Of a stretch of DNA of 64,000 nucleotides, positions 4,141 to 54,600 are shown piece by piece (position 1 is the stretch's first letter; the number at the start of each line of letters is the position of its first letter). A model generated the notes under the pieces. The model made no database searches and was not told where the DNA came from. It saw only the letters and a program-made list of their open reading frames with translations. The stretch is from Macrostomum lignano (taxonomy: Eukaryota): positions 19,773 to 83,772 of the forward strand of contig NIVC01002104.1 in the NCBI GenBank assembly GCA_002269645.1. The letters run 5' to 3'. The translations under genes and the position numbers were made by a program.

Positions 4141-6995
4141 GCGCATTCTAATATAAGACTTAACTGTGAAATTTGAAATTTTAGGGAATAAAGGGAATAA
4201 TGAGAAATAATATTTTTACCAAATTATTAAGTCCACTCGTGCATGCCCTCAATGCAGTTGACGCTACTTAAATACGAAAATACGCAAAATACTAATAAAT
4301 ATTAATCTGAACGTGTGTCTAGATATCCAGACCTTAAGGGAATATGCACTACCTGGAATAGTGCATTATTCAATTATTCTTTTTGGCTTGTGTATCATAG
4401 ATAATATATAGTATTGCTACTCGTATTTATGGTTCATATATATTCATAAGTCCGCGGGCCCAGCCCAGTTGCTAGGGTTCACCCAAGCGGAGCAGGGCTA
4501 GAAGGATTCCCTCCACCATGCAGCCTCAGTCGCATGCCTGACTGACTGCATGGCGTGGCGTGAGGCCCTCCAATATAAAAGTGGGGCATTGAAAATCGCC
4601 ACAATGCCAAATATTTTTTTAAGAATAAGCCGCCGAGAAGCATCTTTGTGAGTCTGGGTCACGTTATCTACATCTTTGATGCGGAACTCTGTTGGAACTT
4701 TTAAAGAAAGTAAAGCTATTGTGTCGCGAGCTATTGTTGATGAAGGTAGTATTATCGCATCGTTCACTGTGCTCACTCAGTGTGATTCACTACATAGAGA
4801 GTGACTCATTCAGCGTGATTCACTATATGTAAGACTCTGTGTGAGACTCAGTTAGTGTGATTTTTCGTGTGTGATCCATCAGAGTGACTCATCGTGTGTG
4901 TGGTTCACTCGGTGTGTGTTTATTAGGATGCAATCTACTCACTCACTCATTCACTTATAGTGTGACTCTCACTCAGCAAGATTGCAGCCCGGACAGCATC
5001 CCACGGCTCATCCAGTTCCTTCGGGTGACAAGACGAGCCATTGTCTTCCCCACGGAAGATCACGCTGCAGGACGGACCGGCGGACCACCCTGACCGGCCC
5101 CCATGCCTCTGCCTGTCTGCTGGCCTTCAGGGGCTGGCGGAATGGGCGACCCTCGCCTCCCCGCTGTGTCTACGGACCACCCTGCAGCTGCAGCTGAGTC
5201 AAGTAAGTCAGCAAGATTGACTGTGCGTGGCTCACTTAAGAAGCTCGACTTATTCTTTGTCAAATTGAGTTGCCCCTGCTTCACTCATGACTCACAGAGC
5301 ATGGTTTGTGAATTGATAAACGTCACGTGATTGCCATACTTCAGACCAGAAGTTCATTATAATGCCTCTAGAAATTCAGGAAGCTCCCTGTGTTCCTTTC
5401 TCTTATAATTTCATTTCCAAGAAAAAAAGGACTGAGGGCGCGGCTTCAATCAAGGCGCAGACTTATTTTCTTCTGGCAGGCACAGCAGACAGGGAAAACT
5501 GCCTGCAGGCTATGTGGACAAGAAATGAAAATTTGTTGGCAATCAGAGATTGGCCCCCGAGGGGAAATGGCTCTCTGCTATCGCTAATGAGGCTGAAGCA
5601 GACTTCAGCATCTCAATTTTTCAAGCTAGTATAAATTCATCATTCCATATTCTGTATTATTTCTACAATAGTTTGATAACAAATACAGTTACGAATACTT
5701 TTTTATAATGTACCAAATCTTTGTAGAACTCTCCGGTATAGGCTAATCTCTATAAACTTACAGAAGCCGATCAAACAAGGTTTGTCAATCTTCAGCCTTA
5801 ACTCTACAAAAATTCAAACTCAAAGGCAAACCGCCTCACACTCGAGAGCTCACTACAAACGATTTTAGGCCCATAATTGAGTGTAAAAGAATTAAACTAA
5901 TAGACAATTATAGATAACTGACCTCAGTTCATGCGGTCTCTCCCTTCACAAAGCACTCAGATCGATGAATATATTATGAAAGCCAAAAAAGAAAGCTCAT
6001 TGACCTAAAAAGAAAAACAAGGGAAGCGAAACAGGCTATGATTCTAGAGATATGTATTTTGAGCAGAAGTGCAACTTCGATCGTTCTGCGATGAAGATCT
6101 TTATCGGTACCGGCTGTTTACACACATACTTGCAGTCTTCGGATGAGAATATACGATCGATATTGACGTTTTTTGTTTATCATCAGGCTATTAAAGCATT
6201 ACCACCTGTGTACAGGTACATCTCTAGCCATGTAAAATGGCTTGAGCTAGTGCTGCTGGAGCCAAATGCACTTCTATCCAACATCTATGCATGCATTGCA
6301 AAGATCGAAACAGCCAAGCTTTTATAGACACACGTCACACAATATTGCGTGTAGTTGCAGAACCTCACTCAAAACTGCAGTACAGCAAGTTATTCTACAT
6401 CCTTTTAGTTCCCTTTACCCAGACTCTCGGCCCATTAGCAGCAGCTGTGGCGCTGAACTCATCTTTTAACCGGACTCACGCGATTACGATCAATAAAAGG
6501 TAAACAGAAATTATGCTTCCTGCACGCGCGATGGTTATATTAAGTGATGGGTACAGATGCATATATATGCCGTACACTAATATCATCCACTTTAATTTAA
6601 CTCCGCGTGTATATATTTCTTAATTAATTTTCCCAACTCGCTCATTCTAAACACAATTAATTGACATGTACTTAAAAAAACTACTTACAGAACTCATGTA
6701 TTGTAATTATTATTTATTTGTAAATCATGCTTCTGGCCTATATATACTCGTAAGGTCAAAGCTGCACATGTTTGTAAAGTTATATTATGCTTCGATAACT
6801 TATAGGTGTAAGCATATAGCACGACTCCCGCCTCTCTACAAGAATGTTACGAGTACAAACCAAAGGATCACTGCACTAGGGCATACATAATTACATTAAT
6901 AGATCATCCATTACGTACTTGCCCTCATCCAGTGTAAAAGTGCGCTGTTGCTGTCACTTCAGGAGAGGACAATCACACATACATGTAAGTATAAG

Positions 6996-8334: not shown

Positions 8335-9644
8335 CGAGGGTCACTCAGAAAGTTCTTAGCCTGAACACGAAAACAGCAACAAATGAACTAAAAAACGACT
8401 ACAAGTGCTCAAAATACTCTCCACCGGCATTGATACAGGCTTGCATCCTGTGAAACCAGCTGTCAAAGCACTGCCGCCAATCCTCATCCCGGAGCTCCTC
8501 GATGATGTTTTTGAACTCATTCACAGCTTCTTCCGGTGAAGAAAAGACCTGGCCCTTCAGAATCTCCTTGCACTTCGGAAACAGAAAAAAGTCGCACGGT
8601 GCCAGGTCTGGACTGTAAGCAGGGTGAGTCATCAGCTGGACCTCACAGTCAGCCAGAAACTCCAGAGTTTGAGCCGCCGTGTGCGCGCTGGCGTTGTCGT
8701 GGTGCAGCAGCACCCCGCGCATTCCGCACCTTGGGCGCCTCTGGCTCACAGCAGAAAAGACTTTGGGCAGGCAAACCGTTGTGTACCAGTCAGCGGTGAC
8801 TGTCTGGCGATCTTCAAGTGAAACGGAAGCCACATGCCCAGTGCGCATGAAGAAACAGGCCACCATCTGCTTGCCGACACTCCGGCTGCGTCGAAACTTG
8901 GTGGGGCTGTCCTCGTCTCCAAAGGTCCACATGGCTGACTGGCGCTTGCTTTCGGGGTCGTATTGATAAATCCAGGTCTCATCGCCAGTGAGGATGTCCC
9001 AGATACGCCGGCTGGTCCCAGATTCGAATTTCTGCAGCATGAATCGGCACCAAGCCACCCTGGTGTCCTTCTGCACGTCCGACAGCTGATGGGGGATCCA
9101 CCGGGAAGCCAGCTTCCGCACTCCAAGGTGTTCGTGCAGAATGGCGTGCACACTCCCCGATCCAATACCGATCTCCTGCTGGATCTGCTGGTAGGTCACT
9201 CGCCGGTCAGCGGCAATCATGCTGGTCACAGCGCAGATATTTTCTGGAGTCACTGCGTCACAGGGTCTCCCGGATCGATGTTCATCTTCGAGGCTTTCTC
9301 GACCTCGGCGAAACTCAGCGAACCAGTTTTTGACGGTTGCGTATGAAGGACATACATGAGTAAAAACGTTCTGTAAACTTTGATACGATTCGGCCGGCGA
9401 CTTGCCTTGCTTGAAGTGCAAGTACATCATTGCTCTGAAGTCGCGATTTTCCAGCTTCATTGTTGAATTGAAGAACTCAGGGGGTGAACTGACTTTAACT
9501 CGCTGCAGTGGACTCAAAAGTGGCTGCTTCTGTTTGAAATTTTTGTTGCAATACTTTTAAAAGTTGGTCTTTACCATAGACAAATTTCATGCTTCTACGT
9601 CTCGTGGATCCTACTCAGGCTAAAGACTTTCTGAGTGACCCTCG
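8335..9644 (-). mobile_element. Full-length mariner transposon, 1,310 bp, 30-bp TIRs, TA TSD
   Basis: TIR CGAGGGTCACTCAGAAAGTTCTTAGCCTGA versus right-end reverse complement with 2 mismatches. TA at 8333-8334 and 9645-9646. Confidence 0.95.
8399..9460 (-). CDS. Mariner DD34D transposase, 353 aa, intact
   Basis: ATG at 9460 (MKLENRDFR). Motifs WIPHQL, DETW, HHDNA and YSPDLAPCD, with 34 residues between the second and third catalytic Asp. No stops or frameshifts. Confidence 0.95.
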   Translation of the reverse strand: MKLENRDFRAMMYLHFKQGKSPAESYQSLQNVFTHVCPSYATVKNWFAEFRRGRESLEDEHRSGRPCDAVTPENICAVTSMIAADRRVTYQQIQQEIGIGSGSVHAILHEHLGVRKLASRWIPHQLSDVQKDTRVAWCRFMLQKFESGTSRRIWDILTGDETWIYQYDPESKRQSAMWTFGDEDSPTKFRRSRSVGKQMVACFFMRTGHVASVSLEDRQTVTADWYTTVCLPKVFSAVSQRRPRCGMRGVLLHHDNASAHTAAQTLEFLADCEVQLMTHPAYSPDLAPCDFFLFPKCKEILKGQVFSSPEEAVNEFKNIIEELRDEDWRQCFDSWFHRMQACINAGGEYFEHL

Positions 9645-14560: not shown

Positions 14561-15089
14561 ATGTAGCACAGTATTGTAGCACTGTAGCTGAAAATTGAGT
14601 TTGGGTTGCTATGCGTCAGTCAATGGACTTTATATATCCTTGCACACAAAACCTGGAATCTTCCAGAAATTTCTGTTTAACCCAATAGAACTTTACTTTT
14701 TAAAGTATATAAAAAATGATTTGTCTTAGCTCCCTAGAAAAAATATAGTCATTCAATAATTCCAATCTTATTGGAATAAGTTAACATTTGGTAGACATCA
14801 TCTAGTATGCCTAGGAAAGTTGGTCTAGCTTATGTATATGCACATGCATGGATGTATATCTAAGATATAGAAATATCTGTGCATAGTGCTAGGGCAAAAG
14901 TGAATGTCACAAGCCTTGAGTGGGCTGAATTGCTGTTGTGAAGTTTCAAAAGACCCGAGGGCGGGATAGAGTGGCTTTGCAGGCTTAAGTTTTTCGACTT
15001 GAAAATTTGCAAAACAAAAAGTGACGTAACTCTACTAACAATTGATGCTTATAATAAACTAATCTAATAGCTCAAAATCATCATTGTGC

Positions 15090-18012
15090 ATGTTGGCAAT
15101 TTCCAGTCGTCAAGGCCTACTAATTGGCCGATTTTTGTCTAGAAATGCGACAACTGCTCGCCACCTAGCTAGCGTGCCTAGTGCCAGTTTCAATGGCACC
15201 AATGGAAGCAGTCAGAGTCGAGGTCCTCAATGGGCTTCGAAAGTGGCACTTGTTAGCGGTGGATTCTTAGCTGGCTGCTGTCTGACAGTCTGGCAGTTGA
15301 GACGTCAGCGCAGCTTCAGCGAGGCTGCAGGCAGTGGCGTGGCTTTGGCTGCCAGCGCTAACAGGCCGACCCCGCCAACTAGCGTCAACCACATCGCCGA
15401 TCTGGTGGAGCTGGTGTCTCCCACGGCAGTTAACATCCGGGTAGAGGGCAGCACGGCGCTGCACTCAATGCTTGGCATGCCCAGCTCGCAGGGCTCCGGG
15501 TTTATTATACGCGAGGATGGCCTTATTTTAACAAATGCTCACGTGGCTGGAAGGTTTAAGGTGAGAACGGAGTAACCTGCTGTTGCTTGTTGGTTACCTG
15601 TGAATCTGTTATTAAAAGTCTAGGTGAAATCTCTGTGTATGGGACACTATTGGCGCCATCTCTGACACTACTGGCGCCATATTTGACACTATTGGCGCCA
15701 TCTCTGATCTCTGACACTATTGGCGCCATCTCTGACACACTATTGGCGCCATCTTCGACACACTACTGGCGCCAACTTTGACACATTACTGGCGCCTTCT
15801 TTGACACACTACTGGCGCCATCTCTGAGATAATCGGCGCCATCTCTAACACACTATTGGCGCCATCTCTGGCACACTATTGGCGCCATCTCTGACACGCT
15901 ATCGGCGCCATCTCTAATACACTGTCGGCGCCGCTATCTTTGACACACTATTGGCGCCATCTCTGACAAACTATCGGCGCCATCTTTAACATAATCGGAG
16001 CAATCTCTGAGACATATCGGCGCCATCTCTGATACACTATTGGCGCCATCTTCGACACACTATTGGCGCCATCTCTGACACTATTGTCGGCATATTTGAC
16101 ACTATTGGCGCCATCTCTGACACTATTGGCGCCATCTCTGACACATTATTGGCGCCATCTCTGACACATTATTGGCGCCATCTCTGACACATAATTGTTG
16201 CCATATCTGACACTATTAACGCCATCTTTGACACTATTGGCGCCATCTCTGACACACTACTGGTGCCTTCTTTGACACACTACTGGCGCCATCTCTGAGA
16301 TAATCGGCGCCATCTCTAACACACTATTGGTGCCATCTCTGGCACACTATTGGCGCCATCTCTGACAAACTGTCGGCGCCATCTTTAAGATAATCGGAGC
16401 AATCTCTGACACGCGATTGGCGTCATCTCTGAGACAATCAGCGCCACTTTTATCTAATATATCGGTGATAATATCGGCGCTATTTTCTATCTTTCCAGAT
16501 CTAGTACAGAAAGTCTAGTATTGTTACTATAAAAAAGTACTTTATTACCATTATCAACGCAGGGCAGCCTGGTTGTCACCCTAACAGACGGTCGCGAGCT
16601 TCCCGCAGAGCTGATAGCCATAGACGCTGAGAGCGACATGGCTCTAGTGAAGGTGTCGGCTCGCGACCTTCCCGTGCTACCGTTGGGCCAGTCGAAGCGC
16701 TGCCGAGCTGGCGAATGGGTCATCGCGATTGGCTCTCCGCTGACCCTCAGCAACACGGTCACGGTTGGTATTCTCAGCAATACAGCCAGAAATTTGGGCA
16801 CCGGTAGCAATATTGAGTATCTGCAAACTGATGCCGCCATCACGTTTGGCAATTCTGGCGGGCCATTGGTGGATATGCATGGCCAGGTGAGCCCGGTATT
16901 TTTATTATTGCCTGGCACACTATTAGACCTGTTTAACACCTGTTAGACAGAAGCTATACCTGTTAGACAGAAGCTATACTTGTTAGACAGAAGCTATACT
17001 TGTTAGACAGAAGCTATACCTGTTAGACAGAAGCTATACTTGTTAGACAGAAGCTATACTTGTTAGACAGAAGCTATACCTGTTAGACAGAAGCTATACC
17101 TGTTAGACAGAAGCTATACCTGTTAGACAGAAGCTATACTTGTTAGACAGAAGCTATACTTGTTAGACAGAAGCTATACTTGTTAGACATAAGCTATACT
17201 TGTTAGACATAAGCTATACTTGTTAGACAGAAGCTATACTTGTTAGACAGAAGCCTCACCTGTTAGACAGAAGCCTCACCTGTTATGCAGAAGCCTCGCC
17301 TGTTAGACGGAAGCTTTACCTGTTAGACAGGAGCCTCACCTGTTAGACGGAAGCTTTACCTGTTAGACAGGAACCTCCCCTGTTAGACAGAAGCCTCACC
17401 TGTTACACAGAAGCCTCACCTGTTAGACAGAAGTCTTATCTGTTAGGCAGAAGCCTCACCTGTTAGACAGAAGCCTTATCTGTTAGGCAGAAGCTTTACC
17501 TGTTAGACAAAACCCTCAACTGTTAGACAGAAGCCTCACCTGTTAGACACAATTTCCACGCACTTTTACTGCAGGCGATCGGCATCAACACGCTGAAAGC
17601 GGACGCTGGCATCAGCTTCGCCATTCCCATCGACGAGGCGAAGAATTTCGTAGACCAGGCCCTGTCCACCTCTCGCCAAGTGATCAGCCGGCCTAAGGCC
17701 TACCTGGGCCTCACGCTGCTGTCGCTCAACCCCACCATCGCCAGGCGGGTCTTCGGTCGCGATGGCATTGACAAAGGCGTCCTGGTGCACTCGGTTCACC
17801 CGGACTCGCCAGCTCAGCGGGCCGGCCTGGCCAGTTATGACGTCATTCTGACTGCGGACGGCGAGTCGGTTCGTCGGGTGTCCGATCTGCACCGCGCTGT
17901 TGCCAAGGCAACGCAACGAGGCGGTGGTAAATCTGTGACTGTTCGATTGCTGGTGCTGCGGTCTGGGCGCGAGCTTCAGCTGGATGTGCAGCCAGAACTG
18001 CAGGGCGGATGA
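15090..18012 (+). CDS. HTRA2: HtrA2/Omi mitochondrial serine protease, about 410 aa; exons 15090-15560, 16563-16886, 17575-18012
   Basis: Arg/Ser-rich presequence, TM helix, catalytic triad in TNAHV, DAESDMAL and FGNSGGPL, then AIGINTLK..GISFAIP and a single C-terminal PDZ domain. GT-AG phase-0 junctions keep the frame. Confidence 0.9.
15640..16440. repeat. Degenerate about 21-24-bp minisatellite (GACACTATTGGCGCCATCTCT) in HTRA2 intron 1
   Basis: Tandem copies with a palindromic TGGCGCCA core. Confidence 0.9.
16938..17550. repeat. 20-bp minisatellite (TGTTAGACAGAAGCTATACC) in HTRA2 intron 2
   Basis: Clear 20-bp period; unit variants change from one end of the array to the other. Confidence 0.95.
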
Positions 18013-19056: not shown

Positions 19057-19617
19057 GCGACTGCAGCTGTCCGGTCTCTGCTGCTCCTGTGCCTGCTGCT
19101 CCCAGCCAGCAGCTCGGCCGAGCAGAAGAAGCCGCTGTCCGAGTACTCTGACGCAGACTTGGAGCGACTCTACAAGCAGTGGGAAGAAAGCGATCCGGAC
19201 TCGGAGCCCGAGAGCACCAGCTGGAAGAGCCCACAGTTGGATCTAACCAAGGTGCCGGATTTGACAGATCCCACACTAATCCTGCAGCACTCCAGCCGTG
19301 GCCAGCCGGTGCCTCTGATTGTCCGCATCGCTGGAGCCGAGGGTCGCGACTCCGTATGGCTGGAGAATCTGTCGCGCAACTGGCAGCTGGAGATGTTCAA
19401 CGCTCACATGGAGACGACTAGGCGAGTTGTAGAAGACGGCACGGTGCAACTGATCGCTCTTGATGGCTCTCAGGTGGTGAAAGTGCGCGAATATTTGCTA
19501 GCCCAGCCTAACTGTTATTCTGTCACTATCGAGGGTCACACTGTACTCGGTAGGGGCGCTCCAGCTGCTGAAGTGGCCGCTGCCGCCGCTGCTAAGGCCA
19601 AGAAGACTGAACTATGA
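19057..19617 (+). CDS. MESD: MESD/Boca LDL-receptor-family ER chaperone, main exon; start codon not in this exon
   Basis: After the acceptor TTCCCCTTTCCAG the frame reads a signal peptide (ATAAVRSLLLLCLLLPASSSA), then SEYSDADLERLYKQWEE, which resembles the MESD DYNDADMARLLEQWE motif. Also WQLEMFN, DGSQVVKVREYLLAQPNCYSVTIEG and C-terminal KTEL (ER retention). Confidence 0.85.
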   Translation, partial: ATAAVRSLLLLCLLLPASSSAEQKKPLSEYSDADLERLYKQWEESDPDSEPESTSWKSPQLDLTKVPDLTDPTLILQHSSRGQPVPLIVRIAGAEGRDSVWLENLSRNWQLEMFNAHMETTRRVVEDGTVQLIALDGSQVVKVREYLLAQPNCYSVTIEGHTVLGRGAPAAEVAAAAAAKAKKTEL

Positions 19618-19829
19618 ACAGTAGTATAGTAGTGTTTACTTTGTATTTTTTTAAAAATGATTTCAACTTATTTTGTTATGTACACAATGAATTGTCTGCT
19701 TCAATCAATTTTTTAAATTACATGTAAATTCATTGTGCGATAACATTTTTTGTGTGATTTCCTTGTTCAAACTTTATAATATAGTAAAAGTTTTTTTCAA
19801 CAATATAAAGTACATTCATGTCTGTCCCC

Positions 19830-20500
19830 TCCTGAATGTACATTTACACCTCTACCCCCTCCAGGGTGTACATTCACAGCTCTACCCCTCAGAGTGTACA
19901 TTTACATCTCTACCCTCTCCCAGAGTGTACATTCACAGCTCTACCCTCTCCCAGAGTGTACATTTACAGCTCTACCCCCCAGAGTGTACATTTACAGCTC
20001 TACCCTCTCCCAGAGTGTACATTTACAGCTCTACCCCCCAGAGTGTACATTTACATCTCTACCCTCTCCCAGAGTGTACATTCACAGCTCTACCCTCTCC
20101 CAGAGTGTACATTTACATCTCTACCCTCTCCCAGAGTGTACATTCACAGCTCTACCCTCTCCCAGAGTGTACATTTACAGCTCTACCCCCTCCAGAGTGT
20201 ACATTTACAGCTCTACCCTCTCCCAGAGTGTACATTTACAGCTCTACCCCCTCCCAGAGTGTACATTTACAGCTCTACCCCCCAGAGTGTACATTTACAT
20301 CTCTACCCTCTCCCAGGGTGTACATTCACAGCTCTACCCTCTCCCAGAGTGTACATTTACATCTCTACCCTCTCCCAGAGTGTACATTCACAGCTCTACC
20401 CTCTCCCAGAGTGTACATTCACAGCTCTACCCTCTCCCAGAGTGTACATTTACAGCTCTACCCCCTCCAAAGTGTACATTCACAGCTCTACCCTCCAGTG
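19830..20500. repeat. About 30-31-bp minisatellite (CAGAGTGTACATTTACAGCTCTACCCTCTCC)
   Basis: Tandem array; it produces ORFs 19733-20540. Confidence 0.95.
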
Positions 20501-21097
20501 TACATGCAATTTGTGGACGCTCCTTAATTGGTTAACATAGGTCAATTAGTTTAGTCTAGTCATTCTGAGTTTCTTTACACGACACCCTAATATGCTAAAA
20601 TGCCTTAGTAGTTCTAACCAAAGAATTCTGTGGTTCTAAGTAAGCAATTAAATTCTTCCTGTGATGTTGAATCATAAAGGTTGTAACGTGACTTATTTAT
20701 TATCTTAACTGTTGATTTTGTCATTATATGAATTAGTTTGACCGTTTATTTAATGTTCCATTGATTTACTTTTAGTCCTACTTTTAGTAGCAATATACGC
20801 AGGTTTTTTAGAAAAACAACCGCAAAATTATGCAAGCAAGAGATTTTCGTCAGTTCAAGTAAAGCACTGGTTGTGCATAATATTGTTTTAAAATGTACGG
20901 TATATTTCCTTAGATCAATCATGCCGGATTTACATTAACAGACCAATTGATTCTACGAGTACCACTAAAAATCAAAAGCATTTATTTTGGTCTTCATTTA
21001 TTTGTTGGAAAAAAGGAAGCCGCTTCTATTGAATCATTTTTTTTGGCTCCTTCAGTTTCTGTAAAGCTCAGGGTTTGCGATAGAGAGAGACAGTAGT

Positions 21098-24000
21098 TTA
21101 ACTTGGCCTTGGCTTTACTTTATTGTACAGCACTATCTTCTTGTCTGCATAGCGGCTGCGGGAGGGTCGCTGCTGCTGCTGTTGCTGCTGCTGGAGCCGC
21201 TTGATTTCTGCCAACTGTTTGGGCGACAGTTTGGCCTCCCGTTCGGCGACACGCTGTGCCACCGATTCCGTCAGCTCTTTGAGCTCCGGAAAGTCGTCGA
21301 GATTGTCGATTAGCGGGATCAGCAGTGGCTCGATGCTTGGGTGCTTGCTGGCTGGAATTGAGCGATGCGGGTGAATTGAGACTGCATTCTTGATGGGCGG
21401 AGTGATAGACGGGAATGTACACTCGATTGGGATAGAGGGGCTGTATGTACATTCTTGATAGGTGGAGTGGTGATAGTGAAACTGTACACTCGATTGGGAT
21501 AGAGAGGCTGTATGTACATTCTTGATAGGCGGAGTGGTAGAGGGGATTGTAATATTCCTGCACGAAAACGAGACGCACGAGTTTGCGTGTAGGAAAATCA
21601 TTGTCTTTTGACCATAGACAAAGTCATTACTGCACGGTTTTCGAGAAACGTTAAGAAGAGATGAAAATTGAGTGGAGAGTTTATAGAAAAGTGTATAAAG
21701 CTTATTGACTATGGCGTCTGTAATCGACTCGGCTCTGAATCCTCCATTAATTGATTTTCGCTATGCTACGGTGTCTGGATTAATTGGCGACGAAATGTTT
21801 ATTGAAAGTGTGTCCAGCAACTTTGAGAGGACGGGCGACGATTTGACTGCACTGATAGCGGATTGCACGTTCAGCGAGGAATTAGAGAAACTTTTCAGCT
21901 CGGATCCGGAAACCTTGTGTAACCTTGACGAATTGGAAAGTCTGGCCGCTCAACTGGAACGCGACAACGAATGTCATTCGACTGTCTCTAAGGATAAAGC
22001 TGTGATCAACCGCTTGACGGCCTGGTTGGCGGAGAATAATTTAAAAGTGGATTACGCGACTGCTTCGGTGGAAGAAATTGCCAAATGGGTCCGCTACTTC
22101 TATGCGACTCTGCGTAAGTCAGACGGCAGCTTCTATTCGCCGAATACAATCGTAGGAATTCGAGCCGCACTGTTCAGGTACTTTATGAAATTACGTGGCC
22201 TCAATATCATCGCTCACGAGGCTTTTCATAGCGCGAAATTGATGGTGAAGAATGTTTGCAATGCGTATTTGAAGTCCGGTGGTCGAGTGCAGCATTACGA
22301 AGCCATTGAGTCGGACGACCTTGTCAAGCTTGCTTCTTACTTCGACAGAAGCACTCCAACACGTTTGCAAGAAGAGGTATATTTCAATGTGTTATTTTAT
22401 TTCGGCAATCGCGGCAGAGAATGGCTACGAGGTCTCACTGTTCGTTCATTCCGAGAGAAGGCCCTATCAAACGGAGCTATGGCGATCGAGTTGCAAGGCA
22501 GCACCTCAAAGAATGTAAAAGGCTCGAGTGACATGCGACTCTGCGACGACAATAAACAGGCCTTGATGGTGGCCAAGCCGGAGTCAAGGCACTGTCCAGT
22601 TCAGGCCTTCCAGCTTTATTTGTCGAAAATTACTGCCGTGCCGGGTTGGAATCAGGAGGACTTCTTTCTGCGTCCGAAACCACGAGTGAATGCGGATGGC
22701 ATCTGGTACACCAAAGTACCAGTTGGAATCAACACTTTGGGGCCGTTGCTCAAGAAGATCTCTTCGAATGCTAACCTTTCCAAGCTGTACACTCCGCATT
22801 GTGTGCGACCTACAGTTGTTACGGAGCTGCATGAAGCTGGCTTTTCTGTCGAAAAAATTGCGAAGGTGACAGGTCACAAGGTGAGCAATTCTTTATTCTT
22901 AGTAAGTTTATTGACACATGGACAAGGAATTTATTAAACACCACCTCTATTCACAGAATAGCGCGTCGGTAGAACGATACATTCGGAGAGGCAAGAAGAG
23001 GGACTCGATCATGGCAGGGATGAGTGATCAGCTGACAGTCGCTCTAGCTGGAACTATGCCGGCACCAAGTTCTACATTGAGCGAAGCTCCTGCAAGGGCT
23101 GTTACAACTACCGACCCGTGCGCCCTGAGCGACGCTCCTACAAGGGCTGTTGCGACTACCGACCCGTGCGGATCAGCGTCAATGTCAACTGTCAAGAAGT
23201 CACTGGTTGTTGAAGAATCGACCACCACACTTGTAGCAGCCCCACTAAGCGGATGAAGATTTTGGCAAACGGCGAAACGAATGTTGTGCAGTTTATTTTC
23301 GAGTAAATGCCGAGAGGGGTGTGAGTAGGTCTATAGACTCATTAACTGTTTCCCTAGTTCCACTTATTATCCTTTTTGTTCTTCCATATTGTTATTGATT
23401 ACATATTCAGTTGCTTCTAAAAATAAATTGTTAAATCGTGCAGGAATGAAGTCATTCCTGCACGATAAGCTAACGTATGTCAAGTGATTTCTACCATAGA
23501 CACAGACATTCCTGCACGATAATAAATCGAAAAAAATCATTCCTGCACGCTGTGGTCAAACGACAATGTACACTCGATTGGGATAGAAAGGCTGTATGTA
23601 CATTCTTGATAGGCGGAGTGGTGATTGTGAGACTGTATACTCGATTGGGATAGAGAGGCTGATGTACATTCTCGATAGGCGGAGTGGTAGATATCTCTAG
23701 GCGGAGTGGTAGATATCTCTAGGCGGAGTGGTAAATATCTCTAGGCGAGATATGTACACTGTAGTACATGTAGGAGGATAATTAAAAACTTTAAGGAACA
23801 AAATACAGTGTACATTGTTTTTATCGATGCAGGCAGTGGTGAGCACTATAGGGTTCTGATGCTCTCGGTTCTAGGAAATATAGATTTTTTATTCTTATCA
23901 ATTCGAATGAGATCATTCTTTGATTAAGCGTTTAATACTTCCGGGAAGTGAACTACAATTAATCAATCTATGAAAGCTTTTGAACTCCCACCCTTCCTAC

Positions 24001-27000
24001 ATTAGTTTAAATGTAATTAAAAGATACAAAGTACTATAGTTATCCAATAAACCTAATTGGAATTGAAAAAAACATTAGAAGCGCTTTTCACTGTAAAGGA
24101 CTTTTAATACAAATGATATTCCTGTTGTTGAGTAGTTAATCAGATATATTAAGGAATTTTCCATTTTACTGTACGACCTCCTCTTGTAAGCAATTTAATC
24201 AAATCTGAAGTTAATCCGGCTTTACGTTGAAGAACAATTTGGAAATTAAAATAACTGCGTCTTGCAATAAAGCGTGATAGCAGTTCAAAATGTATTCGAG
24301 TGCACTGTAGACAGTCATTTTAACACATTTCTCATTCACAGATTTAGACCTTATCTACAGATTTCACATCTACAGATTTCTTATCTGCAGATTTCTCATT
24401 CACACATTTCTCATCTACAGATTTCTCATCTACAGATTTCTCATTCACACATTTCTCATCTACAGATTTCTCATTCACACATTTCTCATCTACAGATTTC
24501 TCTCCCAGAGATTTGCAATCCCTGCTCACCTTGCAATTTGCACAGAACGACAACATCCCGACTGCCAATCTGATCCGATAGCGATTCGTGATCCTGCAGC
24601 TCGGGCAGCTTGAGCAGTTGGCCACCCACTGTGCTGAGCTCGATGACAGCTGGAATAGGAAAGTTTTTATAGATTTTTAGTATGTAGCCAGGCTCTTAAA
24701 ATTGTGGAAATCCTAGATATTTTTATTGTGAAATGCCTGACAGGAAGCTTAGCAAGTTTCAGTGGGAGATTTTTTCCAATCTGACAAATAGTTCGCAGCA
24801 GGAGGCAAAAAAACACGATTACAGCATTTTTCCCATGAACTTATCTCAACAGAATTTTTTCACGCTTGTAGCTGCTACAATCACATGTAAGCAATACAGA
24901 CAACTCATCATCTGTTCGCTGCGTACGAGTACTCGTATACGCAGTAGTGTTATATTTCCACCGAGTTCCTCCGGGAGAACTGTAGCATCCAGCTAGCTAG
25001 CTGGTTATGACACCAACACTGCCAACCAACATGCTTGACCTGTCACTACACGTATTGGAAATTTCACCCTACGTCAGTTGCTTACCCGGCTAAAAATAAA
25101 TAGAATTGAGGCTTTTTAACGAAACAGATGAGTGAACAGCAAAACCTCAGCAAAATGTTTTTACAGGGCACAAAAGATCTGCTTTGACTCTTTGGACTTT
25201 TAATGTATTGAAAACTAAAAGGGTTACGCAGGATTCTGTTGAGGCACGCAGGGGTCGGAAAAAAGATTGTGGGGAGAGCCAATCAAAGCCACGTACTTTG
25301 CACGCAGAGGACGGAAAACAGGAGGTTAGCGAGAGCCAATCAAAAGCCACACATTTCACACGCAGAGGGACGGAAAACAGGTTGCGGGAGAGCCAACCAA
25401 AAGCCACGTACTTCGCACGCAGGGGATGGAAAACACGGGGTTGGTGAGTGAGAGCCAACCAAAAGCCACGTTACTTCGCACGCAGGGGATGGAAAACACG
25501 GGGTTGGTGAGTGAGAGCCAACCAAAAGCCACGCACTTTGCACGCAGGGGACGGAAAACAGGAGGTTAGCGAGAGCCAATCAAAAGCCACACATTTCACA
25601 CGCAGAGGGACGGAAAACAGGTTGCGGGGAGAGCCAACCAAAAGCCACGTACTTCGCACGCAGGGGATGGAAAACACGGGGTTGGTGAGTGAGAGCCAAC
25701 CAAAAGCCACGCACTTCGCACGCAGGGGATGGAAAACACGGGGTTGGTGAGTGAGAGCCAACCAAAAGCCACGCACTTCGCCCGCAGGGGATGGAAAACA
25801 CGGGGTTGGTGAGTGAGAGCCAACCAAAAGCCACACACTTCGCACGCAGAGGGACGGAAAACACGGGGTTGATGAGTGAGAGCCAACCAAAAGCCACGTA
25901 CTTCGCACGCAGGGGACGTAAAACAGGGGGTTGGTGAGTGAGAGCCAACCAAAAGCCACGCACTTCGCACGCAGGGGACGGAAAACAGGGTGTTAGCGAG
26001 AGCCAACCAAAAAGCCACGTTACTTCGCACGCAGGGGATGGAAAACAGGGGTTGGTAAGTGAGAGCCAACCAAAAGCCGCGTACTTCGCACGCAGGGGAC
26101 GGAAAACAGGGGGTTGGTGAGTGAGAGCCAACCAAAAGCCACGTACTTCGCACGCAGGGGACGGAAAACAGGGGGTTGGTAAGTGAGAGCCAACCAAAAG
26201 CCACGTACTTCGCACGCAGGGGATGGAAAACACGGGGTTGGTGAGTGAGAGCCAACCAAAAGCCACACACTTCGCACTTAGGGGGTGGGGCGGAAAACAG
26301 GGGGACAGAAGGATTGACCCGATCTCAAATCTTAAGAGTACGTTCGTATAACCATTCCAGTCTACATGTAGATAGCTCTATCTAGTTTATGCAACGTAAG
26401 AAACATCTCATAGATTTTAAAACCAATAAAAATCTGTTGAGAGCTCACTATTTTGATCGAGTTTGCAGCTACGCCTGATTGCGCTGATCAGATGCTCTTT
26501 CTGGCACGTGATGTTGAACAGGGCTGTCTTATTGTCTGAAATAAGCAATTTTAATTGGTAAAGTGAAATATTTTTTGAATCCGAAAAAATTCAATCAGGT
26601 ATCATTTTCCCTTAGGGTTAGGTCTGCACATGTATAATACAGCAAACTGAAAATCTATATGCATTGTATTATCCGTCTAGCCTAAATCTTTGCTTAAAAT
26701 ATTCAATTGTCTCCGAAGCATTGGGCAGTTCTCGTATTACAAACCTAAGAGGCTTTGCAGCCTAATGCATCAGCTGCAGTGGGGGAGCATAGGGAGAGAG
26801 AGAGAGAGTAGAAGAAGAGCATTCAGAACCCAAAGTCGTACCTGAAGTCAGAATGGCAACAGGTGAATGGCACTCAGAAACAAGAGATGACAAGACGATA
26901 AAGAGAGAGAGAGAGATCCTCTCGTCCCGACATTGATGAAGCTATGCGATGCTGGACAGTCTCAGATTAGTAAACAGTGCAATCATTTACAACTCCACTC

Positions 27001-28669
27001 TGTCCCTCTCCATCCTCATCGCTATGGTATTAGTTGATGACCCACATAAAAATAGGCCTGGCAACCAATCCCAGTGATTGATGAAGCTGCTACAGAGTTT
27101 CCGGTTGATGCTGAGAAGTCCAGAGAGCAAGCAGTTCGAGATTTCCGGGGTCTTCTCTGTGGGTGAGGATGCCGCCCTATTCAACTAACCATATGACAAA
27201 ATACTCTCGAAGGGATTCATCAATATGAACTGTTAATACGCTTTGAGTATGATTAACTGGTACCCTCGATACACTGCAACAGTAGCCAATCTGCAGTGTT
27301 CCGCGGTAATTAGTCTGTCTAGACTAGATGAACACAGACAAAATGTGATTGTAATAAACTAATATGAGACTTGTCCAAACTGTCATTGGTGATACGATGC
27401 TGATTCATTTAGTTTCATAATATTCAACATATTTCCTAGTTTTCTTTCGAATCAGGTGACTATTCACTAATGAACTCACTCACTCATTCACTAATTTGCT
27501 CATTCAAACACTCATTAATCGCTCATCAACTTACTTTTCATCTTAAGGTGTCACTCATGAACTCACTCATGAAGTCAATCATGAAGTCACTCATGAACTC
27601 ACTCATAAACTCACTCATGAAATCGCTCATGAACTAATCAACTCACTCATGAACTCACTCATGAACTCACTCATGAACTCACTCATGAAATCGCTCATGA
27701 ACTAATCAACTCACTCATGAACTCACTCATGAACTCACTCATGAAATCGCTCATGAACTAATCAACTCACTCATGAACTCACTCATGAACTCACTCATGA
27801 AGTCAATCATGAAGTCACTCATGAACTCACTCATGAAGTCAATCATGAAGTCACTCATGAACTCACTCATGAAGTCAATCATGAACTCACTCATGAACTC
27901 ACTCATAAACTCACTCATGAACTCACTCATGAACTCGCTCATGAAGTCAATCATGAAGTCACTCATGAACTCACTCATGAAGTCAATCATGAAGTCACTC
28001 ATGAACTCACTCATGAACTCACTCATGAACTCACTCATGAACTCACTCATGAAGTCAATCATGAAGTCACTCATGAACTCACTCATGAAGTCAATCATGA
28101 AGTCACTCATGAACTCACTCATGAAGTCAATCATGAACTCACTCATGAAGTCAATCATGAACTCACTCATGAACTCACTTATGAACTCACTCATAAACTC
28201 ACTCATGAACTCACTCATGAACTCACTCATGAACTCACTCATAAACCCACTCATGAACTCACTCATGAACTCATTCATAAGCTCACTCATGAACTCACTC
28301 ATGAACTCACTCATGAACTCACTCATGAACTCACTCATGAACTCACTCATAAACTCACTCATGAACTCACTCATGAACTCACTCATAAACTCACTCATGA
28401 ACTCACTCATGAACTCACTCATGAACTCACTCATGAACTCACTCATGAACTCACTCATGAACTCACTCATGAACTCACTCATGAACTCACTCATGAACTC
28501 ACTCATGAACTCACTCATGAACTCACTCATGAACTCACTCATTAACTCATCAACCCTTCCCAGCCCACTCACCGCCGTGCAGCACACAGAAGTACAGCGG
28601 TGGACAGGCCGCAGAACCGGTCGCAGAGCTCCGACCCGAGCCGGCGTCAGCGGCGGTGTCTGGCGTCAT
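21098..28669 (-). CDS. C22orf15/CXorf65-family uncharacterised protein, 185 aa; exons 28669-28573, 26535-26449, 24649-24530, 21351-21098
   Basis: All three introns are GT-AG, phase 1, and give one continuous frame: LYFCVLHGDNKTALFNITCQKEHLISAIRRSCKLDQNTVIELSTVGGQLLKLP...LIPLIDNLDDFPELKEL. This matches my recollection of the family pattern (F.V.HGDN...N..C; LLENLDDHYPEL). Not database-verified. Confidence 0.75.
21552..23570 (+). mobile_element. Crypton (tyrosine-recombinase DNA transposon), about 2.0 kb, in intron 3 of the C22orf15-like gene, antisense to the host
   Basis: Interrupts a GTACACTCGATTGGGATAG minisatellite. Short direct repeat ATTGTA (21546-21551) and AATGTA (23565-23570). Encodes a tyrosine recombinase; subterminal TTCCTGCACG motifs. 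Confidence 0.85.
21711..23256 (+). CDS. Crypton tyrosine recombinase (DUF3504/ZMYM-like), about 489 aa; exons 21711-22880 and 22957-23256
   Basis: Catalytic set GNRGRE (R), TPHCVR (HxxR), TGHK (H) and SVERY (Y). A 76-nt GT-AG phase-0 intron (22881-22956) joins TGHK to NSASVERY. N-terminal half has DGSFYSPNT..R.ALFRY, typical of Crypton-derived domains. Confidence 0.88.
24350..24500. repeat. Short CAGATTTCTCATCTA / CACATTTCTCATTCA minisatellite
   Basis: Tandem copies at the 5' end of intron 3 of the C22orf15-like gene, next to exon 3. Confidence 0.85.
25230..26290. repeat. About 60-bp degenerate tandem repeat in intron 2 of the C22orf15-like gene
   Basis: GAGAGCCAACCAAAAGCCACGTACTTCGCACGCAGGGGACGGAAAACA recurs about 17 times. 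Confidence 0.95.
27550..28545. repeat. 12-bp minisatellite (ATGAACTCACTC)n with ATGAAGTCAATC variants, intron 1
   Basis: 12-bp period; source of the MSEF and MNSL pseudo-ORFs. Confidence 0.97.
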
Positions 28670-29239
28670 GCCTGCCTTGTCTCGTTCTGGCTGGCTGAGA
28701 AACCTGTGGTTTCGCTTCTAAATTAAAAGATGATTATTGCATATATATTTTACACTTCGCTAGCTCAGACCGCTCTAATAGTAACATTATCATTTCTGCT
28801 AGGCATTGCAACCAACTATTTAGAGAAAAAGCAAGAGATGAAAGACAGGAAAGAGATGTGAGGGATAGAGAGACAAAAAATACGTAACTTGGCCTATTCC
28901 CAGCTACAAGTGGGGTCATAATAGCTTAGAGAAACTGCGGTATACCCAGTCCTGCATCACTTTGAATAGCTCGTATACTCTAGTTGGCGTACGTAGAAAT
29001 TTAAACGAACTCAAAGTTAGTCTGTTACTGGCTGCTCGCTCTGTGCTCTTCTCTTTCTCCTGAGCAACAGCTCTTCTTAGAACTGCTTTGAAATTCTGTG
29101 AGCTGCTGGTAAACAGCTGTGAAAAATTTGTAAGCAATACTTGATGTCTCTGATGACCGCTTGCTAAAGGCCATTCATCATTATGTCATAATTATGTATT
29201 TAGCTTGATCTTTTACCAAATCTAGCTTTTAAATGTGCG

Positions 29240-32450: not shown

Positions 32451-33370
<920 letters not shown>

Positions 33371-33466: not shown

Positions 33467-33472
33467 TATAAA
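33467..33472 (+). promoter_or_regulatory. Candidate TATA box of the prepropeptide gene
   Basis: CCTATAAAG lies upstream of a candidate 5'UTR exon ending CAG|GTGAGA (donor 33614), with an acceptor at 33774 just before the ATG. Confidence 0.45.
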
Positions 33473-33776
33473 GTTGCCTCATCATTGGTTTGTACGAGCT
33501 TCACTGTTCCAGACTGTGGAAGCTCAAGTTGGCTCTGCAGGTGTGACTTGTTAACACAAACATATTAACAGCTGTAATATTTACATATTAACTCCTTTAT
33601 TAACTGAGAACAGGTGAGAATTGAATTGTTTGTCTCTAAAATGAGTTGGGCTTTGACTTTGAGCCGAGTGTGCGCGAGAGTATACTATGTAAATGTATTA
33701 TTTTTTATTTTGTGTTATACGCTCGTACGTCTCATCAATCTGCCTCATCAGTTCTAAGATTGCTACTATTTCAGAG

Positions 33777-34644
33777 ATGCGACTTACCGGTCTGCTGGCT
33801 CTGCTGTCGGTGCTGGGGACTGCACTGTCTGCGGCACAACAACTCGGTGAGCTTCTGTGGGAATTCCTGTCTTTGTATCCACCTATCTTTGTATCTGCCT
33901 GTCTTTGTATCTACCTGTCTTTGTATCTACCTGTCTTTGTATCTACCTGTTTTTGTATCTACCTGTCTTTGTATTTAACTGTCTTTGTATCTATCTGTCT
34001 TTGTATCTACCTGTATTTGTATCTACCTGTCTTTGTATTTACCTGTCTTTGTATCTATCTGTCTTTGTATCTACCTGTCTTTGTATCTACCTGTATTTGT
34101 ATCTACCTGTCTTTGTATTTTCCTGTCTTTGTATCTATCTGTCTTTGTATCTACCTGTCTTTGTATCTACCTGTCTACCTGTCTAATGCAGATCTAATGC
34201 TGATCTGATGCAGATCTAATGCTGATCTAATGCTGATCTAATGCTGATCTAATGCTGATCTAATGCTGATCTAATGCTGATCTAATGCTGATCTAATGCT
34301 GATCTAATGCTGATCTAATGCTATTCATCTAGCATCCTGTACTTGTGAATTCGTAAAATCCCTCAGATGAACAACAGTTGCGGCAGCAGAAGCCGATGCC
34401 GGATGCTGAACTCCTCACTGACCTCATTGAGAAGCGAGGCGTCGAGCTGGCGGGCGACATGTACTGCTGCGTGAACGGCATCCCCGGCTGCTGCCGCCGG
34501 CGCCGCCGCCGCTCAGCGCCGGGTGCCGACGAGGCCCAGGAGAAGCTGCGTGCCGCCTGCAGCTGCTGCCGCAGGCGGTCGGCCTTGTCGAGTCCCTCGC
34601 CCTGCTGCCTGGCCTGTCGCCAGTTGGCGCACCAGCTGGGCTGA
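33777..34644 (+). CDS. Secreted Cys-rich prepropeptide (neuropeptide- or toxin-like), 115 aa; exons 33777-33846 and 34367-34644
   Basis: Signal peptide MRLTGLLALLSVLGTALSA. Phase-1 GT-AG intron, acidic pro-region, KR site, GVELAGDMYCCVNGIPGCC, RRRRRR, then a second Cys cluster ending in Gly-stop. AATAAA at 34713. Confidence 0.8.
33870..34322. repeat. 16-bp (TGTCTTTGTATCTACC) and 11-bp (GATCTAATGCT) arrays filling the prepropeptide intron
   Basis: Direct periodicity. Confidence 0.9.
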
Positions 34645-34969
34645 AGTTGAACAACAAAGACTTGAAAACAAAACAAAAGCAGAACAAACAGATCGAACAA
34701 AATTCCCCTTGTAATAAACGTTTATGAGCTTTGACTCAAGCGGCTGCGACTTGCTTGCAAATGCAGCCTTTTTTCTGAATTTTGTTTGCTTCTGTTCGGC
34801 TGCAGTTGCCCAGCTCAGGGCTGCGAAATGCTTTCGGTCGATGCCGCCTTGCCGCGGGATGGAGTACTTATTGATTGGTCTCGGAACCTCCTACTCGTAA
34901 TTAGACAATGAGGCTGATGAGGGCTCTCTATTATGAGCGATCGAAGATGTCCCTCTGGCAGCTCGTGCT

Positions 34970-35255
<286 letters not shown>

Positions 35256-35791
35256 TGACAACAGTGGAAAATGCAGCTTCGCCAATGCTATTTTGGTCGA
35301 ATGCAGCTGCTGATCCGCCCACTCGGTCAAGGGCCAGCCCAAATTTACAATTGGCAGTGCGACGCACTCTTCAACTCTTCTTGAGTCTCGCGCGCACTTC
35401 ATTAATTAACTTTGCTGCTCAACTTCCGAATAATTTCAGCCAGTTTCGCCCCCCCCCCCCAGTTAGGAACTAGATTCCTTTCTCCATCCTTTTCTCCACT
35501 TGGAGCTGTCTACACATTGATTCATTGTCAGCGCGAGCTGGTTAGCAGAGGAAGTGAAAATCCGGCTTCCCAGCCGCCGAAAACATGTTTTCTTTATTTC
35601 TAGCCATGACAGTTTCTAGCCTCCAAAGGTAAATAGTCTTTGAGTTAATTCAATTTTGTGGGAATTCGTAGAAATAGCTGGTTAATTTGATCCATTGTTT
35701 CAAGTTCTGCGTGACAAAGCCGTGCTGACAATTTCCTAAGAGTTTTATTATTTACTATGCCCTAGCCAATTAGCTATGAGGGAGATAAGTG

Positions 35792-51654: not shown

Positions 51655-54600
51655 TCAGGGCAGGACTCGAAGCCGATCAGAGAATCGACGCCAGGATCTG
51701 CGCGACATCAAACTTAACCGGGCCTGAGGAGAGAAAATAACAACAAATGCTTAACATTCTACTAAAGGCAACTGGTCAGCAAGCATTAGGATAATCTTTC
51801 TATATTATAATCCTATGGTTTTTCTTATGTAAGGTTGAATTGCAATATTTGAAGGCCTTTACCGGATCAATGACGGCTTCGGGTTCGCCAGCGTCGCCAG
51901 ATTCGTCGACTGGGGAGGCCGTGGCGGCGGGTGCCAGCCGGCGCTGCTTGGCTGCAGCAGAGCTGCCGGACTTTGCCCAGCTGAACATGATTGGACGCCA
52001 CTTCAGGCCCAAACTGCGACTGTTGCCATTGTCAAAGTCGTTTGCATCGCCAGCTTCAGGGACGACGACTTCAGCGGCTGGCTCGTCGCCTCCGCCACTG
52101 CTGCTGCTGACTTGCTCGCTGGCTTGGCCGCCAGTTGCCGCTGTGGTATTGGCCGAAGTCGTTGGCCAGCAGTTGCGCTTCGAACCGACGGTCAACTGGG
52201 TAAACTGCGATAAAGTCCGAAGACCACCGATCCGCTTAGCAACTAGCGACTGACGCTGATTCGAGCTGTCAATCATTCTAGCTCTGCTGCTGCTGTTAGA
52301 ATCCTCCTCAGTTTTGGCCAAATCGCTAGCCAATAAGCCAACAGCTTGGCCAACAACAGTGTCCACAGCTGGAAAGACGTTGGACGATTCTGGCGGCGAC
52401 TCTGGCCAGGTAGGCCCGAAACTCGGCTGTTGGAGCAGCAGCGATTCGCCTCGTGCGATGACCGACGCCAGCTCAGATTCGACCGAGCTCAATTCGCCCG
52501 CTATTAGCGACTCCATCGATTGCGTCACGTCTTGGATTGACTGGTCGGCTACGAAGGTGTCCGCCTCGGAGGATGTCGACACGCGACGGGGCTGAGTCTC
52601 AGACGCTGTAGTCGCTGGTGCTGCCGGAGGCTCCGACGCTGTAGTCGCTGGTCCTACCGGAGGCTCCGACGCTGTCGTTGGTGCTGATGGAGGCTTCGAC
52701 GCTGTAGTCGCTGGTCCTACCGGAGGCTCCGACGCTGTCGTTGGTGCTGATGGAGGCTCCGACGGTGTAGTCGTTGGTGCTGATGGAGGCTCCGACGGTG
52801 TAGTCGTTGGTGCTGATGGAGGCTCCGACGGTGTAGTCGTTGGTGCTGATGGAGGCTCCGACGGTGTAGTCGTTGGTGCTGATGGAGGCTCCGACGCTGT
52901 AGTCGTTGGTGCTGATGGAAGCTCCGACGCTGTAGTCGCTGGTGCTGATGGAGGCTCCGACGCTGTAGTCGTTGGTGCAGATGGAAGCTCCGACGCTGTA
53001 GTCGCTGGTGCTGCCAGAGGTTCCGACGGTGTAGTCGTTGGTGCTGATAGAGGCTCCGACGGTGTAGTCCTTGGTGCTGATGGAGGCTCCGACGGTGTAG
53101 TCGTTGGTGCTGCCAGAGGTTCCGACGGTGTAGTCGTTGGTGCTGATAGAGGCTCCGACGGTGTAGTCCTTGGTGCTGATGGAGGCTCCGACGGTGTAGT
53201 CGTTGGTGCTGCCAGAGGTTCCGACGGTGTAGTCGTTGGTGCTGATAGAGGCTCCGACGGTGTAGTCCTTGGTGCTGATGGAGGCTCCGACGGTGTAGTC
53301 GTTGGTGCTGATGAAGGCTCCGACGCTGTAGTCGCTGGTGCAGATGGAGGCTCCGACACTGCACTCATTGGTGCTGCCGGAGGCTCCGACGCTATCGTTG
53401 GTGCTCGAGGGGCGGAGGTGGCGGCGGCGGAAAAGAGGAAATTGAAGGCGGCGGCGGAGGATCAGAGCCCAGCCGAGATTCGAATCGAATAAGCAGCTTC
53501 AGCGAACGCGACACGTCCAAGTCTATCATCTCGTTTGATGACGGCGGCAGTGGTGGAGGCGGAGGCCGCGGCGGCCTTGGCAGCAAGGGGCGCAGCTGCC
53601 TCCGCCTGGCCTTGGTGTCGCCAACCGGCTGCACGGAGGCGTACTTCCGACACAAGCCGCACTGGCTGGGACTGACGACTGCCGCTCCCGCGTAGGGGAC
53701 GAACTCGCGACTATCAGCTGGCGCAGCCGATCCCGACTGTGGATTGCTAGTGGACAAGTCGGCGACGCCGACACTGCAGGCGGCAATGACGGTGGACAGT
53801 CGGCTGTAGGCATCGGCAAGGGCAGCTGGCACGGTGTACTCCTGACTGGGGTCGGTAGTGTCTAGACGCATCAGCGGATCGGGACAGTCGCTGCTTGACG
53901 GCTGTTCCAGCAGGATGCAGGCTTCACCATTGCTGGCGTCCTTATCAACAGCGCCGTTGCTATCCTCGCCGCCGATGACGTGTTCCGGACCCACTAAACT
54001 TAAAGCGCAGTCGTTAACAAGGTCGTCAACCACTTCTAGATTGTCCAGATCGATGCTGCAAGAGTCGTCCTCCTCGTCGTCTTGTACAGCGCCGCCGTTC
54101 TGTTCAATGCTGGACGGATCAACAGTCTCGCAGGCTTCGGTAAAATCTTGTTGACTATCCGGTTCCGGGCGGTCGGCCTCCGCCTGCTCATCGGCTTTAC
54201 GGGTGTCTGGTGTTTGGTCAGTTGCTAACAAACTAGCGTTCCGGTCCGCGCCCAAATCAATGACAATATTGCGGCAGAACAGGCCGGAAGCAGGGTACAG
54301 GACTTCCTCGGATTTCTGCTGCTGCTGGCGGCGGTCTGTTGAAGTGGTGTCAGAGCATTATTTACGGTTCTTAAATGAGATCGAAGGGATTCTTGAATGA
54401 GATCAAAGGGCGATTCTTAAATGAGATCGAAGGGATTCTTAAATGAGATCGAAGGGATTCTTGAATGAAATCAAAGGCGATTCTTAAATGAGATCGAAGG
54501 GATTCTTAAATGAGATCGAAGGGATTCATGAATGAAATCAAAGGCGATTCTTAAATGAGATCGAAGGGATTCTTAAATGAGATCGAAGGGCGATTCTTGA

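Follow-up and report, generated by a model that had tools for sequence, protein, structure and literature searches.

Mlig027086 of Macrostomum lignano encodes a putative secretory peptide precursor with a CC-x6-CC peptide conserved between paralogues

The question raised by this locus is whether a short cysteine-rich frame in the genome of the flatworm Macrostomum lignano belongs to a genuine gene and, if so, which of its parts would leave the cell as a finished peptide and to what family such a peptide might be assigned. The frame lies within a 64-kb stretch of DNA (hereafter the window) on contig NIVC01002104.1 of assembly Mlig_3_7 (GCA_002269645.1), to which the surroundings of the gene matched exactly. 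A sequence-only reading of the window had proposed an undescribed prohormone or toxin precursor that gives rise to two different disulfide-rich peptides, referred to below as peptide 1 and peptide 2.

Along its whole length the spliced product showed 100% identity to two GenBank entries of 115 aa, PAA60840.1 and PAA61624.1, which carry the name 'hypothetical protein BOX15_Mlig027086g1/g2'; Mlig027086 is a real gene, already annotated and uncharacterised. Re-derived from the DNA, its coding sequence (33777-33846 joined to 34367-34644, 348 nt after splicing, 115 aa) starts with the ATG at 33777, ends with the TGA at 34642-34644, and is interrupted by a phase 1 intron that splits the Asp24 codon (G/AT), with a donor G/GTGAGC after position 33846 and an acceptor CCCTCAG/AT from which exon 2 proceeds at 34367. 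This was the spliced frame of the sequence-only reading, which had also placed peptide 1, the KR pair, the run of six arginines, the internal RRR and the AATAAA correctly, as found on re-reading the DNA. The Mlig_3_7 annotation was built only from RNA-seq transcripts (StringTie/TACO and a de novo transcriptome) with ORFs called by TransDecoder (PMC5730564), and deposition of PAA60840.1 from it therefore implies a spliced transcript with the Mlig027086 junction. When the full 64 kb were translated in six frames, just two occurrences of a CC-x(4-8)-CC motif were found, and the gene model is not a product of chance.

When 1.84 billion representative proteins were scanned exhaustively with HMMER, one true relative emerged, Mlig010892g2 of M. 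lignano (E = 2e-8), which is present also as Mlig010892g1 and Mlig031427g1. This paralogue has two exons as well; its signal peptide lies in the first, whose end falls in phase 1 within an Asp codon, so that intron position and phase are shared, and in both genes exon 2 begins exactly 22 codons ahead of a Lys-Arg pair. No tandem paralogues were found in the window or in the other loci retrieved. When the second exons were aligned without gaps, the 21 propeptide codons proved unrelated (Table 1), and they are followed by a conserved block of 26 codons, K46-R71, which reads KRGVELAGDMYCCVNGIPGCCRRRRR in Mlig027086 and KRGIELPGNIHCCVNGIAGCCRRKRR in the paralogue and in which 19 of the 26 residues are identical (consensus KR-G[VI]EL[AP]G[DN][MI][YH]CCVNGI[PA]GCC-RR[RK]RR). 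Nine codons of the block are synonymously changed, the differences at codon positions 1, 2 and 3 number 7, 1 and 14, and dN/dS is 0.12 with a saturated dS of ∼1.5. Within peptide 1 itself no change affects the four cysteines or the motif CCVNGI.GCC (dN/dS 0.11, dS saturated). Neither in the signal peptide nor in the C-terminal tail were the two paralogues significantly similar.

These substitutions bear on whether the cysteine-rich frame is the right one. UniProt and WormBase ParaSite hold alternative models (A0A1I8JHI1, A0A1I8H899 and A0A1I8IXS6) in which exon 1 is joined to one of two weak acceptors, 34432 and 34435, and exon 2 is read in the +1 frame as a Pro/Ala/Arg-rich product, and the GC-rich exon 2 is indeed open in two frames. 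The possibility that the cysteine-rich frame is wrong, or the locus non-functional, is nevertheless extremely small, as the differing codons comprise 9 synonymous and 7 non-synonymous in the cysteine-rich frame against 3 and 15 in the alternative frames, the differences are in excess at third positions in the former, the alternative acceptors are devoid of a polypyrimidine tract, and the transcript-based GenBank model is the cysteine-rich frame. Two of the alternative entries bear the names 'ELA protein' (A0A1I8JHI1) and 'Ghrelin and obestatin prepropeptide' (A0A1I8IXS6); both were rejected as mis-framed on the substitution pattern, and these misleading database names are hereby corrected.

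The comparison supports, for this single pair of paralogues, the view that peptide 1 and the convertase sites on either side of it form one unit under strong purifying selection, which agrees with the sequence-only reading in its proposal of a peptide excised between KR and the poly-arginine run. Stronger conservation of the mature peptide than of the spacer is a hallmark of neuropeptide precursors, and retention of peptide and processing sites amid freely changing spacers is thus a pattern typical of a convertase-processed signalling-peptide precursor. As the only cysteines of the paralogue are the four of its peptide 1, this segment would be self-sufficient for disulfide pairing.

Table 1. 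Coordinates (window positions) of the features of Mlig027086
Feature	Position	Strand	Remarks
Candidate TATA box, TATAAAG	33467..33473	+	Read from the sequence
Putative non-coding 5' exon	33503..33613	+	Start placed by the TCACTG motif, end at donor CAG/GTGAGA; sequence only
Putative 5'UTR intron, GT...AG, 161 nt	33614..33774	+	GT at 33614, AG at 33773-33774; sequence only
Coding exon 1	33777..33846	+	Met1 to first base of Asp24; signal peptide and start of propeptide; identical to PAA60840.1
Coding intron, phase 1, 520 nt	33847..34366	+	Two minisatellites; paralogue intron homologous in position and phase
Coding exon 2	34367..34644	+	Asp24 bases 2-3 to Gly115, and TGA; frame backed by codon-position substitutions vs paralogue
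Propeptide spacer EQQLRQQKPMPDAELLTDLIE, acidic, Gln-rich	34369..34431	+	Unconserved in paralogue (1/21 residues, 24% nt identity, ungapped)
Lys46-Arg47 dibasic cleavage site (predicted)	34432..34437	+	Kept in paralogue; AAG identical, CGA/CGC synonymous
Peptide 1 GVELAGDMYCCVNGIPGCC, 19 aa, CC-x6-CC	34438..34494	+	13/19 residues identical to paralogue GIELPGNIHCCVNGIAGCC
Arg67-Arg72 polybasic (furin/PC-type) site (predicted)	34495..34512	+	RRKRR at the same place in paralogue, other codons
C-terminal extension SAPGADEAQEKLRAACSCC-RRR-SALSSPSPCCLACRQLAHQL-G	34513..34641	+	43 residues, 6 Cys, internal RRR 34570-34578, terminal Gly
AATAAA polyadenylation signal	34713..34718	+	69 nt past the stop; read from the sequence

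Exon 1 of Mlig027086 encodes an n-region MR, an h-region LTGLLALLSVLG and a c-region TALSAA, and by heuristic examination both paralogues have a basic n-region, a hydrophobic core of ∼12 residues (Kyte-Doolittle means over nine residues of up to 2.6) and a c-region of small residues. The N-terminus is thereby supported as signal-peptide-like, as had been proposed, and its exact cleavage site is ambiguous (after about residue 19 or 20). On the combined sequence evidence, the explanation that we hold to be probable is that the 115-residue preproprotein would enter the secretory pathway, where the signal peptide (residues about 1-19/20) would be removed, subtilisin-like proprotein convertases would cleave after Lys46-Arg47 and within the Arg67-Arg72 run, and the trailing arginines would be trimmed by an enzyme of the carboxypeptidase E/D type, releasing the acidic 19-residue peptide 1 cross-linked by two disulfides. 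Peptide 1 would then be the selected functional product and most likely an extracellular signalling ligand (a neuropeptide or peptide hormone) with a conserved receptor. The 43-residue C-terminal extension would be co-secreted and might be cut into further peptides; use of the terminal Gly would then leave Leu114 amidated. Signal cleavage, convertase processing, disulfide formation and receptor signalling are the steps that we infer.

KR and R-x-K/R-R are sites of PC2, PC1/3 and furin. The upstream site, I-E-K-R, carries no Arg at P4, so that PC2 or PC1/3 would fit it better than furin, and the downstream arginine run would suit any convertase, with a carboxypeptidase to trim what is left. The trimmed form of peptide 1 with two disulfides has a computed mass of 1898.713 Da, a pI of 4.05 and a charge of -2.3. 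In neither paralogue does a Gly precede the basic run, and peptide 1 accordingly carries no amidation signal; Gly115 at the end of the precursor is confined to Mlig027086, the paralogue ending in ...KLP.

Since poly-arginine runs are not always cleaved and the ten cysteines downstream of KR make an even total, the segment G48-G115 might alternatively be secreted as one uncleaved mini-protein with the arginine runs as surface loops. The paralogue argues against this: it retains peptide 1 with KR before it and the basic run behind it, and has none of the last six cysteines, from which it would follow that peptide 1 is an independent unit of folding and selection. The residues of the sites moreover stay basic through R/K exchange and synonymous changes, as in a recognition site. 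We consider the uncleaved form improbable. An AlphaFold2 model from an alignment of four sequences had a mean pLDDT of 52.5, and peptide 1, at <50, showed no confident fold.

The C-terminal extension is a different matter. Its translation follows from the frame, which runs on from peptide 1, and its six cysteines, an even number in the spacing C-x-CC-x11-CC-x2-C, its internal RRR and its terminal Gly had led to the proposal of a second disulfide-rich peptide. According to this proposal the precursor would deliver two bioactive products, peptide 1 and either an amidated six-cysteine peptide 2 or, after cleavage at RRR, a two-chain heterodimer with three cysteines on each chain. AlphaFold2 placed the two cysteine clusters on opposite helices of a helix-loop-helix (pLDDT ∼57-71), which is suggestive only. 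The paralogue lacks this stretch; its own tail is IRRRRSFDDQLEFDANKLP, with neither cysteines nor a terminal Gly, and the similarity between the tails does not exceed chance, as 7% of shuffles reach the observed score. Two basic runs follow peptide 1 in both genes, one residue apart in the paralogue and 19 apart in Mlig027086, and the CC-RRR-S of the extension resembles the CC-RRRRRR-S that precedes it; a local duplication or extension, perhaps recent and internal, is therefore a plausible origin of part of this stretch. No independent lineage shows constraint on peptide 2, and a separate bioactive product from the extension is unsupported by comparative evidence. Two products are on balance a doubtful outcome, albeit one to be kept in mind. 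The observation behind the sequence-only reading was thus confirmed, and of its interpretation the part concerning peptide 1 gained support and the part concerning peptide 2 did not.

Mlig027086 exists as three near-identical copies, g1 to g3, which is expected as the M. lignano genome is neopolyploid. Copy g3 differs from the coding sequence of the window at 2 of 348 nt, one change being synonymous and the other A20P, which falls in the c-region of the signal peptide, and the non-repetitive flanks of the copies differ by ∼2-3%. The 129 nt of the C-terminal extension carry no substitution among the three homeologous copies where ∼2.8 would be expected at the flank rate (P ∼0.06, weak). The low divergence of the coding sequence as a whole is a weak sign of constraint, and the copies are too similar to demonstrate it for peptide 2. 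The coding intron consists almost wholly of two minisatellites, a 16-mer (33866-34176, 19.4 copies) and an 11-mer (34182-34322, 12.8 copies), and measures 520, 553 and ∼1491 nt in the three copies, with differing minisatellite copy number.

Tandem repeats are unusually abundant throughout the 64-kb window. An (ATAG)n microsatellite of 919 bp (32451-33369) ends ∼100 bp upstream of the candidate TATA box, and a (GACA)n microsatellite of ∼295 bp (34970-35264) lies downstream of the gene; both produce long spurious ORFs on both strands. Minisatellite arrays at 27751-28726 (both strands), 3539-4146 (minus strand), 19733-20540 (plus strand) and 25471-26270 (minus strand) hold ORFs 150-320 aa long that occupy more than a single frame or strand; these are mechanical ORFs and not genes. 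On the minus strand at 51800-54255, two ORFs of 522 and 287 aa encode tandem repeats rich in Pro, Thr and Ser (SEPPSAPTTTP...), after which comes a non-repetitive part; no Pfam match was obtained for them, and they could be a gene for a mucin-like secreted protein or a repeat artefact. Mobile elements and host genes are also present. An uninterrupted ORF of 372 aa at 8399-9517 (minus strand) encodes a mariner/Mos1-type transposase (HTH_48, Transposase_1, DDE_3) that is possibly active or was so recently. An ORF of 410 aa at 21705-22937 (plus strand) matches DUF3504 and, weakly, the tyrosine recombinases (Phage_integrase), as in a Crypton-like element or a domesticated derivative, and similar genes flank gene copy g3 (locus L003, 1-1393 and 16912-18348). 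Host-gene exons were seen on the plus strand at 19159-19617 (MESD LDL-receptor chaperone, Pfam E = 9e-22) and 15084-15575 (start of an HtrA/trypsin-like serine protease).

Upstream of the coding sequence, the TATAAAG and the possible 5' exon were located where the sequence-only reading had put them, and they are retained as candidate and putative features (Table 1). The counterpart of the TATA box in the paralogue is CT(G)CTATAAAA; it precedes an initiator-like motif, TTCACTG, by a comparable interval of 36-38 nt. In the alignment of the two promoters only the TATA box and the nearby TTCACTG were in common, too little to indicate conserved regulation. The putative 5' exon is free of upstream ATGs and the stretch 33614-33774 is not; differences from copy g3 are few, and four of them lie in this putative intron. 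SL trans-splicing onto the 33774 acceptor is an alternative to the 5'UTR exon. At the other end of the gene, the AATAAA of the paralogue lies ∼95 nt past its stop.

To what family might peptide 1 belong? At E <= 10 Pfam offered no family for the precursor, for the paralogue or for the peptides taken singly, a sequence search of the PDB gave no relative and only a low-scoring chance match to nucleolar protein 3, and word-indexed searches of 5.8 billion proteins with the precursor and the paralogue as queries gave no relatives beyond M. lignano, all in keeping with the earlier proposal of an undescribed family. A search of the same 5.8 billion proteins with a trimmed two-sequence profile missed its own members and is uninformative. 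The HMMER scan had a second match, a protein of 1849 aa with repeated Cys/Tyr-rich modules and 19% identity, which was rejected as an artefact of repeats and composition. The protein databases likewise gave no match outside M. lignano, to described flatworm precursors or otherwise, a result to be read with the fact that very short peptides escape HMMER. The literature, searched with the main flatworm precursor catalogue outside its reach, gave no match to the gene ID or the motif CCVNGI; matches to 'CCVNG' were chance ones to the end of an M-superfamily conotoxin sequence. In an expression look-up, the gene IDs of Mlig027086 and its paralogue were absent from the searchable supplements of M. 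lignano papers. Mlig027086 is apparently lineage-restricted, and its apparent restriction to M. lignano is due in part to the proteomes of other macrostomids being missing from the databases.

In its organization the predicted precursor resembles those of neuropeptides and peptide hormones, including the flatworm npp/spp precursors: a signal peptide, an acidic spacer and a short peptide between dibasic or polybasic sites, a mature peptide far more conserved than the spacer, and a small two-exon gene with paralogous precursors. The searches gave no sequence similarity to any annotated precursor, however, and the gene stands apart in that its peptide is present in one copy, bears two pairs of vicinal cysteines (CC-x6-CC) and would end in a free acid. 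The neuropeptides of flatworms are, to our knowledge, mostly short, linear and amidated.

The likeness to cysteine framework V (CC-CC) of the Conus T-superfamily conotoxins, which had been pointed out earlier, stood as far as the CC-x6-CC spacing is concerned, and peptide 1 shares with these toxins its shortness and its predicted release from a pro-region after a basic site. Homology was not detected, as neither Pfam, phmmer nor the PDB gave a conotoxin; the toxins come from cone snails and the gene from a flatworm, and in conotoxins the signal and pro-region are conserved and the mature toxin is hypervariable, the inverse of what the two Mlig027086 paralogues display. CCRFamide, the other peptide to which attention had been drawn, is similarly a Cys-containing prohormone peptide with vicinal cysteines of resembling spacing, whereas Mlig027086 has no CCRF-Gly or RF-Gly anywhere, ends in ...CRQLAHQLG and shows no sequence similarity to it; in the literature found, CCRFamide is solely an arthropod (orphan) neuropeptide without a characterised receptor. 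With neither sequence similarity nor the CCRFamide end, both links come down to resemblance in Cys spacing. The two-chain, disulfide-linked product that might be cut from the extension at basic sites, with its modelled helical Cys-bearing segments, recalls insulin/relaxin in concept, but the characteristic spacings (C-x11-C of the B chain, CC-x3-C-x8-C of the A chain) are absent and Pfam gave no insulin match.

A small, secreted, Cys- and Arg-rich product could come equally well from a gland cell, and it could be a secretion of the seminal fluid or prostate, a toxin, or a peptide with an antimicrobial or defensive role, processed by ubiquitous convertases of the furin type and acting on mates, microbes or prey. 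The family was seen only in M. lignano, the run of six arginines includes furin consensus sites, and the product would be cationic if its arginines were retained. The reproductive and gland transcripts of this species are also known to include many that are secreted and lineage-specific (for example PMC5977470 and PMC7336406). Against a gland secretion stands the conservation of the precursor, which is greatest in the mature peptide, signal and pro-region having diverged. Toxins, antimicrobial and reproductive peptides usually exhibit the reverse pattern of conservation or diversifying selection. The trimmed peptide 1 is moreover acidic, unlike cationic antimicrobial peptides, and the I-E-K-R site points to PC2 or PC1/3 more than to furin. 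As the mature peptide is both the constrained part and acidic, we infer a neuro-endocrine ligand in preference to a gland secretion, which we regard as unlikely, short of negligible.

Mlig027086 appears to be a lineage-restricted addition to a well-known and in itself ordinary class, the convertase-processed secretory peptide precursors. Taxon-restricted prohormone-like genes are common, and the gene challenges nothing in existing understanding. A bolder reading, which we advance as speculative and rather unlikely, is that Mlig027086 and Mlig010892 constitute a macrostomid- or flatworm-specific family of CC-x6-CC double-disulfide signalling peptides, with a framework that arose independently of framework V of cone snails, and that Mlig027086 gained a C-terminal module yielding a second product (a six-Cys amidated peptide or a two-chain heterodimer); if true, the gain of this module would be the birth of a new bioactive peptide inside an existing prohormone. 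M. lignano is a flatworm model amenable to transgenesis and RNAi, and the literature search found no published catalogue of its neuropeptides. Two old paralogous genes encode peptide 1, which can be synthesised and offers a concrete candidate ligand with which receptors could be deorphanised and behaviour, reproduction or regeneration studied; as a signalling peptide, it would add a disulfide-rich type to the flatworm repertoire.
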